Positions 25,832 to 32,750 of a DNA stretch of 64,000 nucleotides are shown here, piece after piece. The notes under the pieces were generated by a model. The model saw only the letters and a list, made by a program, of their open reading frames with translations, did no database searches and had not been told where the DNA came from. Position 1 is the first letter of the stretch, and each line of letters starts with the position of its first letter. Location: positions 2,418,001 through 2,482,000 of the forward strand of contig CATNEN010000034.1 in NCBI GenBank assembly GCA_950097015.1. The letters are read 5' to 3'. Position numbers and translations under genes: made by a program. The DNA comes from Macrostomum hystrix. Lineage: Eukaryota > Animalia > Platyhelminthes.

Positions 25832-26145
25832 CTCTAGATGTGTCACACCCATTCTAGATCTGTCACACCACTCTAGATCTCACACCCACTCTAGATCTGT
25901 CACACCCATTCTAGATCTGTCACACCACTCTAGATCTGTCACACCCATCTAGATCTGTCACACCCATTCTATATCTGTCACACCCATTCTAGATCTGTCA
26001 CACCCATTCTAGATCTGTCACACTCATTCTAGATCTTTCACACCCATTCTAGATCTGTCACACCCATTCTAGATCTGTCACACCCATTCTAGATCTGTCA
26101 CACCCATTCTAGATCTGTCACACTCATTTTAGATCTGTCACACAG
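25832..26145. repeat. 20-bp minisatellite (TCTAGATCTGTCACACCCAT)n immediately 3' of the RBR gene stop
   Basis: Period 20; each unit carries overlapping XbaI/BglII palindromes. Confidence 0.92.
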
Positions 26146-26148
26146 GGT

Positions 26149-29100
26149 TTAGTCGCCGGGCACCTGAGTCTGCCTTGGCGCCACAGTGCATGGAGTGTTG
26201 AAGTTGCCGCACTGCCACTTGCCATCGACCTTGGGCTTGAGGCAGATAAAGCAGAACTCCTGTTCGCAGACGCACTTCATGTGCTTGCAGGCGCGCACGT
26301 GCTCGATAATGATACCGCAGCGAGTGCAGGCTCGGCGCCCCGGCACACCTGCGTAAGGAGTAGTATAGCTTTTGTCAGGCTATCTCAGCGAATGGGCATT
26401 CAAACTCAGCCAGCCCATCTTGTCACTGCGGTTTTTTACTGAAGCTGCTAATTTTTACCATAGAAAAGCTTTTTAAGACCATGCTATCTCAGCTTGGGAC
26501 GAGCAATCTCAGCCAACATATAAGTTCTATGTTATTCTGTCTATAGTTTTGTTAACATTTTTAAACAGTCTATTTACAAGAGAAAAACAGGGTAACAGAA
26601 AACAGAGTATGGGATGGGATATACAAAGCAAGCTTTGAAAATGGCTACCAGAGATGATCAGTTAACAGGCTATTTCAGTTTAGTTGAAAGATACCTCCTG
26701 GATGCATTGTGGGAAGCTCCGGTTGCAGTGAATTTCCCACCTGGCTACCTTCATTGGCGTCACAACTTGCAAAGAGTCTCGGCCCACCCGCTCCAGCAGA
26801 AAAATGCGGCAAAAAGTCTGCTCGTGCTAATTTTTGATCTGCGCGTCCAGAGGTTGTACTTGTACCCCGTCTCGTCTATAGAACTTATATGTTGGCTGAG
26901 ATTGCTCGTCCCGAGCTGAGATAGCATGGTCTTAAAATGCATGTCTATGGTAAAAATTAGCAGCTTCAGTAAAAAAACCGCATTGACAAGATGGGCTGGC
27001 TGAGTTTGAATGCCCATTCGCTGAGATAGCCTGACAAAAGCTATACATCTAGGATTGTAGCCCGCCCAGATTGATCCCTATCCCAGATTGATCCCAATCC
27101 AAATTGATCCCCATCCCAGATTGATCCCCAATCCAGATTGATCCCCATCCCAGATTGATCCCCATCCCAGATTGATCCCTTTACTAAATTGATCCCGATC
27201 CCAGATTGATACCCATCCCAGATTGATCCCCAATCCAGATTGATCCCTATCCCAGATTGATCCCTATACTAAATTGATCCCGATCCCAGATTGATACCCA
27301 TCCCAGATTGATCCCCAATCCAGATTGATCCCTATACTAAATTGATCCCGATCCCAGATTGATACCCATCCCAGATTGATCCCCAATCCAGATTGATCCC
27401 TATCCCAGATTGATCCCCAATCCAGATTGATCCCCATCCCAGATTGATCCCCATCCCAGATTGATCCCTATACTAAATTGATCCCGATCCCAGATTGATA
27501 CCGATCCCAGATTGATACCCATACCAAATTGATCCCCATCCCAGATTGATCCCCATCCCAGATTGATCCCTATACTAAATTGATCCCGATCCCAGATTGA
27601 TACCGATCCCAGATTGATACCCATACCAAATTGATCCCCATCCCATATTGATCCCCATCCCATATTAATCCCCATCCCATATTGATCCCTATCCCATATT
27701 AATCCCCATCCCAGATTGATCCCTATACTAAATTGATCCCGATCCCAGATTGATACCCATACCAAATTGATCCCCATCCCAGATTGATCCCCATCCCATA
27801 TTAATCCCCATCCCATATTGATCCCCATTCCAGATTTATTCATTCCATGCCCATGACAATCCCAGATTTCCCGCACAAATTTACCCTTGACGCTGACAAT
27901 CTCCTTGTCGGGCGCCTGAGCCAGGATGGCGATGCGTGGGTCCTTGCCGGAGCAGATGTCGTTGCCGCACTTATCTTTACCAGCACCGCGCCACTGGTTT
28001 AGGCAGTACCAGCAGAACTCAAAGTATTTGCCGGGCTTTGAGCACACCGGACAGACCATGCGACGGTCTTGGTTGCTGCGCCGCTGGCAGTAGGACTGGC
28101 AGCCCGGGCACTCCTGCTCGTTTCGGGATTTGAGAAGTTTAAACTAGCACTGAATTCCCAAAAATCTCTCTTACTCATTTCCTTTTCTCTTTGTTAAGCA
28201 CTCGCATTCTCCCTGTTCTCGAATCCTATTCACACATTCCCCCAGTTCTTGATCCCCATTCTCACATTCTCCCCGTTCTTGGATCCCATTCTCAAATTCT
28301 CCCTGTTCTTGGATCCCATTCTCACATTCTCCCTGTTCTTAAATCCCATTCTCACATTCTCCCTGTTCTTAAATCCCTTTCTCACATTCTCCCTGTTCTT
28401 GGATCCCATTCTCACATTCTCCCTGTTCTTAAATCCCTTTCTCTCATTCTCCCCGTTCTTGAACCCCATTCTCACATTCTGCTTGTTCTTGAACCCCTTT
28501 TTTCATTGTTGTTAAAAATTCTACATTTTCCAGTTAAATTATCGTTTCCCTAACGCACCTGAATATTAACCGAACGGCGCAGGTAGTTCTCAGAGATTTT
28601 GCGCTCAAACTTGCGCTTCTCAGCGTCGGTGAGCACGGCGAGGCGGCGGACAACGACGTAGCTCCACTCGGCGTTGCAGCCGACGGCCGCGTTTTTCGGA
28701 TCCACCCAGGGGCAGAGGAATCGGCTGCGGCCGGTGTCCAGGAGGCTGCGGCAGTAGCTGGTGAGGCTCTCGGGCCCGATGGCATGACCGCACGGCATCT
28801 TGGCCCGCTTGTTGTCCTTGTCATCGTCCCAGGTGATCATGTCCGGCAGGTCTGTCAGCTCCACGCCATCATCCAGTGCCTGAGCGATGGGTGGCGGTTA
28901 CATTGCAACATGACCGTCAAAACTAGATAGCTGACGTTTTTAAATATCTGCTGACACCCTTCTTTGTCTGCCGACACCCTTTATCCTATCTGCCGACACC
29001 CTTTATCATATCTGCCGACACCCTTTATCCTATCTGCTGACACCCTCGCTGTCCCATCCGCAGACACCCTCGCTGACCCATCCACAGACAACCTCGCTGA

Positions 29101-30085
29101 CCCATCCACAGACAACCTCGCTGACCCATCCACAGACAACCTCGCTGACCCATCTGTAAGCCTTGCAAATACGCTTCAGAACATTGTATTTGCATGGCTC
29201 ACATGATTCGCGTACACGACGAGGCGTCCGTGGATCGATACGGCCCAGGAATGGGAGGAAGAAGTTCGGCGAGCTTTCGCTGGGGAGCGTGTGCGTGTGG
29301 GACAAAGAAACAGCTGCCCCCTGTGTTAGCAATCTCCCAGCGTTTCTCCCTCTCTCCCCATTCTGCCTCTGTTGTGCGCGCTGCTTGAATTTAAATACAC
29401 TGGAAGCGAGAGGCAGAGCTTCGCTGGCGCTTTTCATGTGACTCCGGAGTCCACAGAGAAACGGGCCTCTGGCCCGTGGAGCGTTTATCTCTCTGTTGCT
29501 GTGGCAGAAGGTAACAGGAGGACAAAACTTTCCTGTTATACCATCCACAGACAACCTCGCTGACCCATCCACAGACAACCTCGCTGTCCCATCCGCAGAC
29601 ACCCTCGCTGACCCATCCACAGACAACCTCGCTGACCCATCCACAGACAACCTCGCTGACCCATCCACAGACAACCTCGCTGACCCATCCACAGACAACC
29701 TCGCTGACCCATCCACATACAACCTCGCTGACCCAGCTGATCCTTTACCTTCGCGCCTCCGTGCAGGCGCAGCACCATGAACAGGTTGGCGTGATTCTCC
29801 AGGTGGAACTCGTTCAGGTGCTTATCCTTGTGCTGCTCAAAGTCGATAGTCTTGCTTACGTAGACCACCTGATAGGCGTTCGGCTTGAGCCCGGTCTTGT
29901 CCTCCAGCTTGCGAAACAGGTCCTTGATCTGAGCGTCCTGGACATTGTTAAGTATGCTTGTGTTTAAGTACATTCGTTTAGGATTCGTTGAGTTTGATAA
30001 TGATACAACTCACCTTGTGTATGTCAATAGCTGTTGTGGAGCCCTTGAAGCCCCTGACAAAGATTTGAATCAGGTTGTCACCCAT
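26149..30085 (-). CDS. Ubiquitin-like domain + RBR (degenerate RING1-IBR-RING2) E3 ligase, 336 aa; exons 30085-30014, 29937-29749, 28879-28559, 28113-27885, 26348-26149
   Basis: Spliced ORF of 1011 nt. Ubl MGDNLIQIFVRGFKGSTTAIDIHK|DAQIKDLFRKLEDKTG...VLRLHGG; IBR ECPGC...VCPVC...EFCWYCLNQW; RING2 ACTRCG..IEHVRACKHMKCVCEQEFCFICL. All junctions GT..AG and frame-compatible. Confidence 0.88.
26368..27041. mobile_element. Foldback/MITE-like non-autonomous DNA transposon with ~163-bp TIRs
   Basis: 26368-26530 is the near-perfect reverse complement of 26878-27041; flanked by TATA on both sides (TA or TATA TSD). Confidence 0.85.
27066..27835. repeat. 17-bp minisatellite (ATTGATCCCCATCCCAG)n in RBR intron 4
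   Basis: Period 17. Confidence 0.93.
28195..28497. repeat. 30-bp minisatellite in RBR intron 3
   Basis: (CTCACATTCTCCCTGTTCTTGGATCCCATT)n. Confidence 0.9.
28948..29736. repeat. 24-bp minisatellite (CCTCGCTGACCCATCCACAGACAA)n in RBR intron 2, split by an insertion
   Basis: Arrays at 28948-29154 and 29541-29736. Confidence 0.9.
29155..29540. mobile_element. 386-bp insertion with 5-bp TSD; probable solo LTR
   Basis: Unique sequence TGTAAG...TGTTATA flanked by duplicated CCATC (29150-29154 / 29541-29545), which occurs once per intact repeat unit. Confidence 0.65.
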
Positions 30086-30394
30086 TCTAAGAGACTAACT
30101 ATAAATCTGCTTATTTCATTATTAAAATCTTTCCAAAACGAAAAACGAAAATTGGCCTGTAGAAACCAGCCGCTAATATGGAAATTTTTAGTGCCAGTAT
30201 AACAAGGTTCTAAACAGCGTACATTAGTGTTGCATCGAATGTCTAGCAAGGCCAATACACATTTCTGCAACATGGATCTAATTCACTTGCACGAGAGTAC
30301 ACTGAACCTGTACAATTTATAATACGGTACTTCTAAATTTAACCCGCCGCTTTTGCAGATGAGACACACACTGTACTATACAGTTCTTATAGTA

Positions 30395-32750
30395 CCGTGT
30401 ATTATGGGATTCTGCACTGAGGTTTATGCCACTCCAATCTGTGTTATGGGATTCTGCAGTGAGGTTTATGCCACTCAAATCTGTGTTATGGGATTCTGCA
30501 GTGAGGTTTATGCCACTCAAATCTGTGTTATGGGATTCTGCTGAGGTTTACGCCACTCAAATCTGTGTTATGGGATTCAGCTGTGAGGTTTACGCCACTC
30601 AAATCTGTGTTATGGGATTCTGCTGTGAGGTTTACGCCACTCAAATCTGTGTTATGGGATTCAGCTGTGAGGTTTACGCCACTCAAATCTGTGTTATGGG
30701 ATTCAGCCGTGAGGTTTATGCCACTCCAATCTGTGTTATGGGATTCTGCTGAGGTTTACGCCACTCCAATCTGTGTTATGGGATTCTGCTGAGGTTTACG
30801 CCACTCCAATCTGTGTTATGGGATTCTGCTGAGGTTAACGCCACTCAAATCTGTGTTATGGGATTCAGCAGTGAGGTTTACGCCACTCAAATCTGTGTTA
30901 TGGGATTCAGCAGTGAGGTTTACGCCACTCAAATCTGTTTTATGGGATTCTGCTGTGAGGTTTACGCCACTCCAATTTTTGTTATGGGATTCTGCTGTGA
31001 GGTTTACGCCACTCAAATCTGTGTTATGAGATTCTGCTGTGAGGTTTACGCCACTCAAATCTGTGTTATGAGATTCTGCTGTGAGGTTTACGCCACTCAA
31101 ATCTGTGTTATGGGATTCTGCTGAGGTTTACGCCACTCAAATCTGTGTTATGGGATTCTGCTGTGAGGTTTATGCCACTCCAATCTGTTTTATGGGATTC
31201 TGCTGTGAGGTTTACGCCACTCAAATCTGTGTTATGGGATTCTGCTGAGGTTTTTGCCACTCAAATCTGTGTTATGGGATTCTGCTGAGGTTTACGCCAC
31301 TCAAATCTGTGTTATGGGATTCTGCTGAGGTTTACGCCACTCAAATCTGTGTTATGGGATTCTGCTGAGGTTTACGCCACTCAAATCTGTGTTATGGGAT
31401 TCAGCTGTGAGGTTTACGCCACTCAAATCTGTTTTATTGGATTCTGCTGTGAGGTTTACGCCACTCCAATTTTTGTTATGGGATTCTGCTGTGAGGTTTA
31501 CGCCACTCAAATCTGTGTTATGAGATTCTGCTGTGAGGTTTACGCCACTCAAATCTGTGTTATGGGATTCTGCTGTGAGGTTTACGCCACTCAAATCTGT
31601 GTTATGGGATTCTGCTGTGAGGTTTACGCCACTCCAATCTGTTTTATGGGATTCTGCTGTGAGGTTTATGCCACTCAAATCTGTGTTATGGGATTCTGCT
31701 GTGAGGTTTACGCCACTCCAATCTGTATTATGGGATTCTGCTGTGAGGTTTATGCCACTCAAATCTGTGTTATGGGATTCAGCTGTGAGGTTTATGCCAC
31801 TCCAATCTGTGTTATGGGATTCTGCTGTGAGGTTTACGCCACTCAAATCTGTGTTATGGGATTCTGCTGTGAGGTTTACGCCACTCAAATCTGTGTTATG
31901 GGATTCTGCTGTGAGGTTTACGCCACTCAAATCTGTGTTATGAGATTCTGCTGTGAGGTTTACGCCACTCAAATCTGTGTTATGGGATTCTGCTGTGAGG
32001 TTTACGCCACTCAAATCTGTGTTATGGGATTCAGCCGTGAGGTTTATGCCACTCCAATCTGTGTTATGGGATTCTGCTGAGGTTTACGCCACTCAAATCT
32101 GTGTTATGGGATTCTGCTGAGGTTAACGCCACTCAAATCTGTGTTATGGGATTCAGCAGTGAGGTTTACGCCACTCAAATCTGTGTTATGGGATTCAGCA
32201 GTGAGGTTTACGCCACTCAAATCTGTGTTATGGGATTCAGCAGTGAGGTTTACGCCACTCAAATCTGTTTTATGGGATTCTGCTGTGAGGTTTACGCCAC
32301 TCCAATTTTTGTTATGGGATTCTGCTGTGAGGTTTACGCCACTCAAATCTGTGTTATGAGATTCTGCTGTGAGGTTTACGCCACTCAAATCTGTGTTATG
32401 AGATTCTGCTGTGAGGTTTACGCCACTCAAATCTGTGTTATGGGATTCTGCTGTGAGGTTTACGCCACTCAAATCTGTGTTATGGGATTCTGCTGTGAGG
32501 TTTATGCCACTCCAATCTGTTTTATGGGATTCTGCTGTGAGGTTTACGCCACTCAAATCTGTGTTATGGGATTCTGCTGAGGTTTATGCCACTCAAATCT
32601 GTGTTATGGGATTCTGCTGAGGTTTACGCCACTCAAATCTGTGTTATGGGATTCTGCTGAGGTTTACGCCACTCAAATCTGTGTTATGGGATTCTGCTGA
32701 GGTTTACGCCACTCCAATCTGTTTTATGGGATTCTGCAGTGAGGCTTATG
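30395..32750. repeat. 42-bp (40-bp variant) minisatellite, ~2.35 kb
   Basis: (GTGAGGTTTACGCCACTCAAATCTGTGTTATGGGATTCTGCT)n. Confidence 0.95.

Follow-up and report, generated by a model that had tools for sequence, protein, structure and literature searches.

A gene encoding a ubiquitin-like domain with a Gly-Gly end and an RBR ligase in Macrostomum hystrix, a candidate precursor of a modifier and its own E3

Does a ubiquitin-like domain (Ubl) that keeps an intact Gly-Gly (GG) end and is fused to a ligase remain there as a regulatory domain, or is it cut off and used as a modifier? The question is raised by a gene of the flatworm Macrostomum hystrix, located in a 64,000-nucleotide stretch (GenBank assembly GCA_950097015.1, contig CATNEN010000034.1, positions 2,418,001 to 2,482,000) that was analysed as a whole and is called here the window. 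At 30085-26149 on the minus strand, where an earlier note on this DNA had placed it, a five-exon gene was confirmed, the 336-amino-acid (aa) product of which consists of a Ubl ending in LRLHGG and a RING-between-RING (RBR) ligase; the gene is single copy within the window. Comparison of this protein with its relatives favours, at a probability of about 0.55, the reading that it is a precursor which would be cleaved after the GG into a free modifier and the modifier's own RBR ubiquitin-protein ligase (E3). No more than about a dozen and a half ubiquitin-like conjugation systems have been described, each of which opened a field, and the Ubl-RBR protein is a candidate for a further one, widespread in marine invertebrates, arbuscular-mycorrhizal fungi and teleosts.

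The start codon of the gene is at 30085-30083 and the TAA stop codon at 26151-26149, the reading frame is intact, and all introns are GT-AG. A 1120-nt contig assembled from the public run X5 (depth 145) spans 30139-26094 and carries all four splice joints with zero mismatches, so the Ubl and the RBR part are on one spliced mRNA. The whole transcribed unit (26094-30139, minus strand, as are all features of the gene given below) includes a 5' untranslated region (UTR) of ~54 nt, the five exons and a 3' UTR of ~55 nt. Contigs with single joints of the gene were found in three further runs; the joint 28112/28558 was seen in runs X1, X2 and X5, and the joint 27883/26346 in X3 and X5. The introns are rich in minisatellites that create many long spurious open reading frames (ORFs), and the gene could in principle have been a chance chain of such ORFs, or a pseudogene left by the shuffling of exons of a ubiquitin gene onto an RBR gene. 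This is refuted by the spliced mRNA and by the existence of about 125 relatives that are 40-84% identical and range from fungi to chordates, and the intact frame with its GT-AG introns and the high-confidence structure models likewise speak against an artefact or a decaying gene, which is given practically no weight here.

The Ubl comprises residues 1-85, from IQIFVRGFKGSTT... to LRLHGG, and is encoded by the coding part of exon 1 (30014-30085, residues 1-24, the start codon and the first two Ubl strands; joint 30013/29936) and by exon 2 (29749-29937, residues 25-87; joint 29748/28878), which contributes the remaining Ubl up to ...LRLHGGAK and is followed by the donor gtaaag. It was aligned end-to-end with ubiquitin by phmmer and is a divergent, family-specific domain, ~25-30% identical to ubiquitin, directly before the RBR part on the same mRNA, much as the earlier note had described it. 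Structure models were those of an 84.5% identical homologue, the Logan transcript product P0003, standing in for the window protein. In the AlphaFold model of P0003, which has a predicted local distance difference test (pLDDT) score of 89.3, the Ubl superimposed on ubiquitin, the OASL Ubl and ISG15 with Z 13-14 and a root-mean-square deviation of 1.2-1.5 Å over 75-78 residues; a search with the whole model listed ubiquitin folds only, the Ubl having filled the list. The domain therefore has the beta-grasp (ubiquitin) fold. The linker that follows, residues 86-98 (13 aa), is the lowest-confidence part of the model, with pLDDT 66 at residues 81-90, as expected for an exposed, flexible site.

A word-based search with P0003 returned about 125 relatives at expectation (E) values below 1e-40. 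The closest are from Macrostomum and include, besides P0003 itself, two tandem genes of M. lignano that are 82% and 74% identical to the window protein. The others belong to cnidarians (octocorals, stony corals and anemones), three hemichordates, amphioxus, bivalves, a gastropod, the annelid Owenia, Glomeromycotina and Endogonales fungi, and teleosts (si:ch211-212k18.15). No tetrapod, insect, nematode or ascomycete, and none of the usual model organisms, is among them. Tandem Ubl-RBR copies occur in M. lignano and amphioxus; those of M. lignano (P0004 and P0001, L004 10001-17319) lie between a protein kinase gene and OGG1. What is already known is the Ubl and the RBR as kinds of domain, and the family as database entries under automatic names ('uncharacterized', 'ARIH1-like', 'DDB_G0292642-like'), to which the ESM Atlas adds likewise only automatically named clusters. 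The mention, in the earlier note, of uncharacterised look-alikes in aquatic animals was thus correct. Its statement that their function had not been described also agrees with the literature, where no functional description of the family and no account of the Ubl-RBR fusion, of the invariant GG, of the split genes of fish or of the linkage to E2 and protease genes (both below) was found, in a survey that covered few subscription journals and may have missed prior work.

For the conservation counts, 66 full-length members of animal and fungal origin were aligned. Loss of the GG in homologues had been named beforehand as the outcome that would speak against a released modifier, and the alignment gave the opposite: G84 and G85 (codons at 29755-29760, the proposed processing site and C-terminus of the mature Ubl) are invariant in 66/66, and they are the sole invariant columns of the Ubl. 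The domain is otherwise the fastest-evolving part of the protein, its mean pairwise identity being 40%, against 63% for RING1, 52% for the IBR and 57% for RING2. The tail has the form [LMV]-R-L-x-G-G, as in ubiquitin and ISG15, with the Arg at the position of ubiquitin Arg72 (R81) kept in 61/66 and the Leu in 64/66; the position x, corresponding to residue 74, is L in 19 members, P in 14, H in 13, R in 10 and K in 6. Proline directly after the GG blocks cleavage by deubiquitinases. It was found in 0/66, the residue after the GG being S in 36, A in 9 and E in 6, and N, V or others elsewhere. The distance from the GG to RING1 varies between 13 and 55 residues, and the amphioxus copies carry long low-complexity inserts exactly in this linker. 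Among database matches long enough to contain the whole Ubl, 73/77 have the GG, and of the four that lack it three seem to be faulty or altered gene models. In the fourth, the protein P0112 of an environmental assembly, the N-terminus bears a ubiquitin-like region that looks real; having no GG, this region can only work in cis, if it works at all.

These data bear on the possibility that the Ubl is never cut off and is a built-in regulatory domain in the manner of Parkin or HOIL-1, which docks on the RBR part to inhibit or activate it, or binds partners, with the GG kept for a structural or contact reason, for instance as a tail that mimics the tail of donor ubiquitin. P0112, with its Ubl-like region and no GG, fits such a domain; so do the positions of the I44 patch, which stay hydrophobic, and the K48 equivalent present in 60/66, a pattern expected where ubiquitin-binding sites dock, and the best whole-chain structural match of the protein is indeed Parkin (Foldseek E 9.5e-12). 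We nevertheless consider it unlikely, since the known cis-acting Ubls (Parkin, HOIL-1, Rad23 and ubiquilin) have lost the GG, whereas here the GG is precisely what is kept in a domain that otherwise evolves fast, behind it lies a linker that is poorly conserved, variable in length and modelled with low confidence, and proline is never seen at the position where it would prevent a cut. Cleavage after Gly85, on this comparative evidence, is judged probable.

Precursors of this general layout are known, as in Ub-eL40, Ub-eS31 and FUBI-eS30 a ubiquitin-fold protein ending in GG is likewise made in frame with another protein, and deubiquitinases cut off the GG-ended part of such fusions (PMC6332867). 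The Ubl-RBR protein differs from the ribosomal fusions in that its partner is an E3 ligase and its Ubl is specific to the family and evolves along with the partner.

In three teleost lineages the two parts were found in separate genes. The RBR orthologues of teleosts are 258-269 aa long, have no Ubl and start ~20 residues before the RING1 motif, which is roughly the expected start of the cleavage product. In two cypriniforms and a clupeiform (Chanodichthys, Triplophysa and Denticeps) there is a common three-gene arrangement of RBR, Ubl and a ubiquitin-specific protease (USP). The head-to-head neighbour of the RBR gene is a two-exon Ubl gene of 91-105 aa, and the spliced Ubls end in STLFMVLRLPGG-FQTC, STFFVVLRLPGG-L and ATFFLVLRLPGG-SRDPTMIPPSCKGTL; the Ubl body and the LRLPGG are conserved, while the tail after the GG has 1-15 residues and varies in length and sequence. 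A conserved GG under a variable tail is the signature of modifier precursors such as SUMO, NEDD8 and ISG15. The Ubl profile of the family matched the fish Ubls end-to-end with 53-57 bits, and their C-terminal half gave up to 31.8 bits against family members and 25.8 bits against ubiquitin, a weak margin. After the fission the Ubl thus appears to survive as an independent gene whose product still needs its Gly-Gly under a disposable tail, an outcome that a domain serving only to dock in cis would hardly explain: such a domain has no need of an LRLPGG kept beneath differing tails.

The gene beyond the Ubl encodes a USP in all three fish, and the three USPs are homologous to one another. Their type was not discriminated by the His-box exon, with which USP15, USP18, USP7 and USP2 all matched at ~1e-7 to 1e-8. 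An AIG1/GIMAP-type GTPase domain is fused to the USP in two of the three genes (L001 3027-5845, L003 3277-7451 and L002 1648-4120), and a TRIM gene is close by in two of the three loci, so that the fish neighbourhood (TRIM, AIG1) has an immune-gene flavour.

The split genes also bear on a further alternative, in which cleavage takes place and no covalent conjugation follows. The cut would be a switch that activates the ligase, as the earlier note had suggested as its second option, or the free Ubl would be a non-covalent allosteric activator, and the RBR would transfer ordinary ubiquitin. The evidence for cleavage itself is identical under this alternative; moreover, many RBR ligases have allosteric ubiquitin sites, and complexes of phospho-ubiquitin with Parkin, of HOIL-1 and of RNF216 are among the structural matches. 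In addition, the window does not contain the special E2 described below, and the searches did not recover it from flatworms, fungi or fish, lineages in which no dedicated E2 has been recognised. In fish, however, nothing has to be cut away from the ligase, and yet the stand-alone Ubl has an exact LRLPGG followed by a disposable tail, which suggests a need for a free Gly-Gly carboxyl end, meaning conjugation. The linked USP and E2 genes, too, would suit a cycle of writing and erasing better than a one-off switch. Cleavage without conjugation is therefore regarded as improbable, although its activation-switch version is retained as part of this alternative.

Gene neighbourhoods were sampled at eleven loci. 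In three species the adjacent annotated gene of the Ubl-RBR gene is a UQ_con gene, encoding a ubiquitin-conjugating enzyme (E2) of 148-153 aa: in the octocoral Dendronephthya it is head to head at less than 1 kb (L008 7716-9326), in the amphioxus Branchiostoma lanceolatum it is on the opposite strand inside the tandem array of Ubl-RBR copies (L007 3329-9287), and in the hemichordate Ptychodera flava it is ~9.5 kb upstream on the same strand (L009 1-463). The three proteins are orthologues, 43-50% identical over the aligned pieces, and share the motif TP[IV][FY]H[LV]N[IV]..S.G.VCL, in which H[LV]N replaces the canonical HPN; their nearest solved relatives are UBE2K, UBE2L3 and UBE2L6. A word search with this E2 returned octocoral relatives only, while an exhaustive HMMER search disclosed a small E2 subfamily in stony corals, octocorals, amphioxus, the nemertean Lineus and perhaps Dreissena. 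The H[LV]N E2 is also absent from the fish loci; its linkage to the Ubl-RBR gene is real and not universal. In Ptychodera, the last exon of this atypical E2 recurs as a second, incomplete copy downstream of the Ubl-RBR gene (L009 18134-18331), at the edge of an alpha-2-macroglobulin/TEP gene.

The RBR part, residues 99-336, has a half-degenerate RING1, a complete IBR and a complete RING2, so that of the three domains read by the earlier note two stood in full, and 'RING1-like' was an apt term for the other. Exon 3 (28559-28879, residues 88-194) encodes the end of the linker (ALDDGVELTDL), the degenerate RING1 (PDMITWDDD...PCGH...C130...C143...C155) and then two helices, the longer of which runs into the IBR. 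The first CxxC pair and one further ligand are missing, and the eight ligands of a C3HC4 RING are thus incomplete; the possible zinc ligands left are C117, H119, C143 and C155, which make up one site, plus C130, and only one of the two RING1 zinc sites can therefore form. Where the first CxxC would stand, the family alignment shows a nearly invariant PDMITWDDD. The region is still folded with confidence in a model of the RBR part alone (pLDDT 91-95) and aligns with the RING1 of ARIH1.

The IBR, with the linker between it and RING2, is encoded by exon 4 (27885-28113, residues 195-270 plus one base; ECPGCQSYC...CPVC...FCWYC...CGNDIC). An acceptor for this exon at 28083 was ruled out by the homologues, which have ECPxCxSxC, and by the read joint 28112/28558; with the true start at 28113, the 30 nt gained encode ECPGCQSYCQ, the start of the IBR, and complete the domain. 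Nine cysteines are located between residues 196 and 248, in family columns that are invariant or nearly so; two stretches scored above the gathering threshold of Pfam IBR in homologues, and the domain was aligned to the IBR of ARIH2. Exon 5 (26149-26348, residues 271-336 and the stop codon) encodes the RING2/Rcat domain and alone matched Pfam IBR at 6e-5. The catalytic C-x-H motif claimed for this domain was borne out as ACKHMKC, residues 290-296, which aligns with the RING2 of ARIH1 and ARIH2: the Cys is invariant (66/66), the His two residues on is present in 54/66 and the Met is invariant. Cys291 (codon 26287-26289), which aligns with the catalytic Cys region of ARIH1/ARIH2 RING2, is the predicted catalytic, thioester-forming residue.

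Searches of Pfam and the PDB with single exons were nearly blank, and a single-sequence PDB search with the RBR part gave marginal matches to ARIH1 only. The family profile of the RBR part, by comparison, matched ARIH2 (1.6e-7), ARIH1 over the whole RBR (1.5e-3), Parkin (E 0.003, RING2 only) and RNF216. The model of the RBR part alone (pLDDT 90.7) matched only RBR ligases, namely Parkin, ARIH2, HHARI, RNF216, HOIL-1 and HOIP, over ~215-247 columns with E down to 1e-6. The RBR part is thus a genuine RBR, though a very divergent one with Ariadne as its nearest kin, and is predicted to have ligase activity.

None of the accessory domains of Ariadne or Parkin was found in the 336-aa protein. It resembles the Ariadne ligases (ARIH1/HHARI, ARIH2) as the nearest RBR by profile, and several members are named 'ARIH1-like' in databases; unlike them it has neither a UBA-like domain nor a C-terminal Ariadne domain, ending 12 residues past the last Cys of RING2, and its RING1 is degenerate, while the Ariadne proteins have no Ubl with GG. 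As in Parkin, a ubiquitin-fold domain makes up the N-terminus, and the RBR that comes after it has a catalytic Cys-x-His in RING2. The Ubl of Parkin lacks the GG, stays uncleaved and is autoinhibitory. Parkin also has RING0 and a long linker, whereas in the window protein there is no RING0, RING1 follows the GG after 13 residues and has one zinc site, the GG is present, and the sequence similarity to Parkin is marginal and confined to RING2.

In the preferred reading, a deubiquitinase-type protease would first cut after Gly85, at the end of LRLHGG, splitting the protein into an 85-residue Ubl, its Gly-Gly end now free, and an RBR ligase of 251 residues that begins at Ala86. The free Ubl would then be treated like ubiquitin or ISG15 and be activated by an E1, for which the equivalent of ubiquitin Arg72 has been kept. 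It would be handed to an E2, of which a dedicated, atypical kind is encoded next door in several phyla, then be transferred to Cys291 of the RBR and from there to substrates. As one reading frame encodes both, modifier and ligase would be made in equal amounts. We infer the cleavage, the activation by E1 and the conjugation of this Ubl rather than of ubiquitin from comparative evidence: the invariant GG on a fast-evolving Ubl, the lack of Pro after it, the floppy and variable linker, the split genes of fish with their tails, and the linked USP and E2 genes. The released modifier proposed in the earlier note is supported to the extent that each of its computationally testable predictions held.

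Several observations weigh against this reading. The support is comparative throughout, and in Parkin and HOIL-1 an N-terminal Ubl on an RBR can be purely a cis-acting regulator. One zinc site of RING1 is lost, and normal binding of E2 is not assured. The tail frequently has Pro (14/66) or Leu (19/66) at position 74, which common deubiquitinases or E1s may not accept, and the ubiquitin-like region of P0112 lacks the GG altogether. Finally, the exhaustive HMMER search brought up no H[LV]N E2 in flatworms, fungi or fish, and an E2 or USP of the linked kind is absent from the 64-kb window and from the loci of M. lignano, Rhizophagus, Dreissena and Actinia.

Whether the parts make up a pathway of their own is a more tentative matter. 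It is possible, at somewhat less than even odds, that they form an undescribed Ubl conjugation pathway to which the modifier, the RBR E3, the atypical H[LV]N E2 and, for fish, the USP are all dedicated, and in which the E3 itself is the extension of the precursor. A close parallel is the ISG15 system (UBE2L6, USP18). The two have in common the LRLxGG tail, a precursor with a C-terminal extension (a short tail in fish, the ligase elsewhere), a putative dedicated E2 and USP-type protease, here suggested by gene linkage, the immune-flavoured neighbourhood in fish (TRIM, AIG1), and the lineage-specific tandem copies of the family. They differ in that ISG15 has tandem Ubl domains and not a single one, that the E3 is an RBR encoded with the Ubl and not HERC5/6, and that the linked E2, nearest to UBE2K and UBE2L3, is not UBE2L6. 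A ligase that is the C-terminal extension of the precursor of its own modifier is a layout without a described parallel. Under the dedicated-pathway reading, the pathway would predate the split of animals and fungi; tetrapods, insects, nematodes and yeasts would since have lost it, and because of these losses it would have been overlooked.

Comparative genomics supplies an unusually complete list of parts, namely modifier, E3, linked E2 and linked USP. Trypsin would cut the window Ubl after R81 and leave LHGG rather than GG on the modified lysine; because position 74 is neither R nor K, conjugates of this Ubl and of those of 50/66 family members would escape K-GG enrichment. If the Ubl is only a cleavable or a cis-acting regulator, the family would still represent a new mode of control of RBR ligases, and the half-degenerate RING1 would bear on how RBRs recognise E2s.

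The introns of the gene and its flanks are filled with minisatellites of ~20-28-bp units, at 25900-26140, 26960-27860, 28220-28520, 28980-29190, 29545-29740 and 30300-32600; the long repetitive ORFs to which these give rise on both strands are not genes. In intron 2, two of these blocks flank a 387-bp stretch (29155-29541) that is covered in four runs, in three of them more deeply than the exons of the gene. It has no match in Rfam and is single copy in the window. Its coverage always has a loose end at 29155, and also at 29541 in X1 and X5, and in X1-X3 it lies within contigs of 380-950 nt that are otherwise unmatched to the window. Most likely the stretch is a piece of a dispersed transcribed repeat, or else a nested unit.

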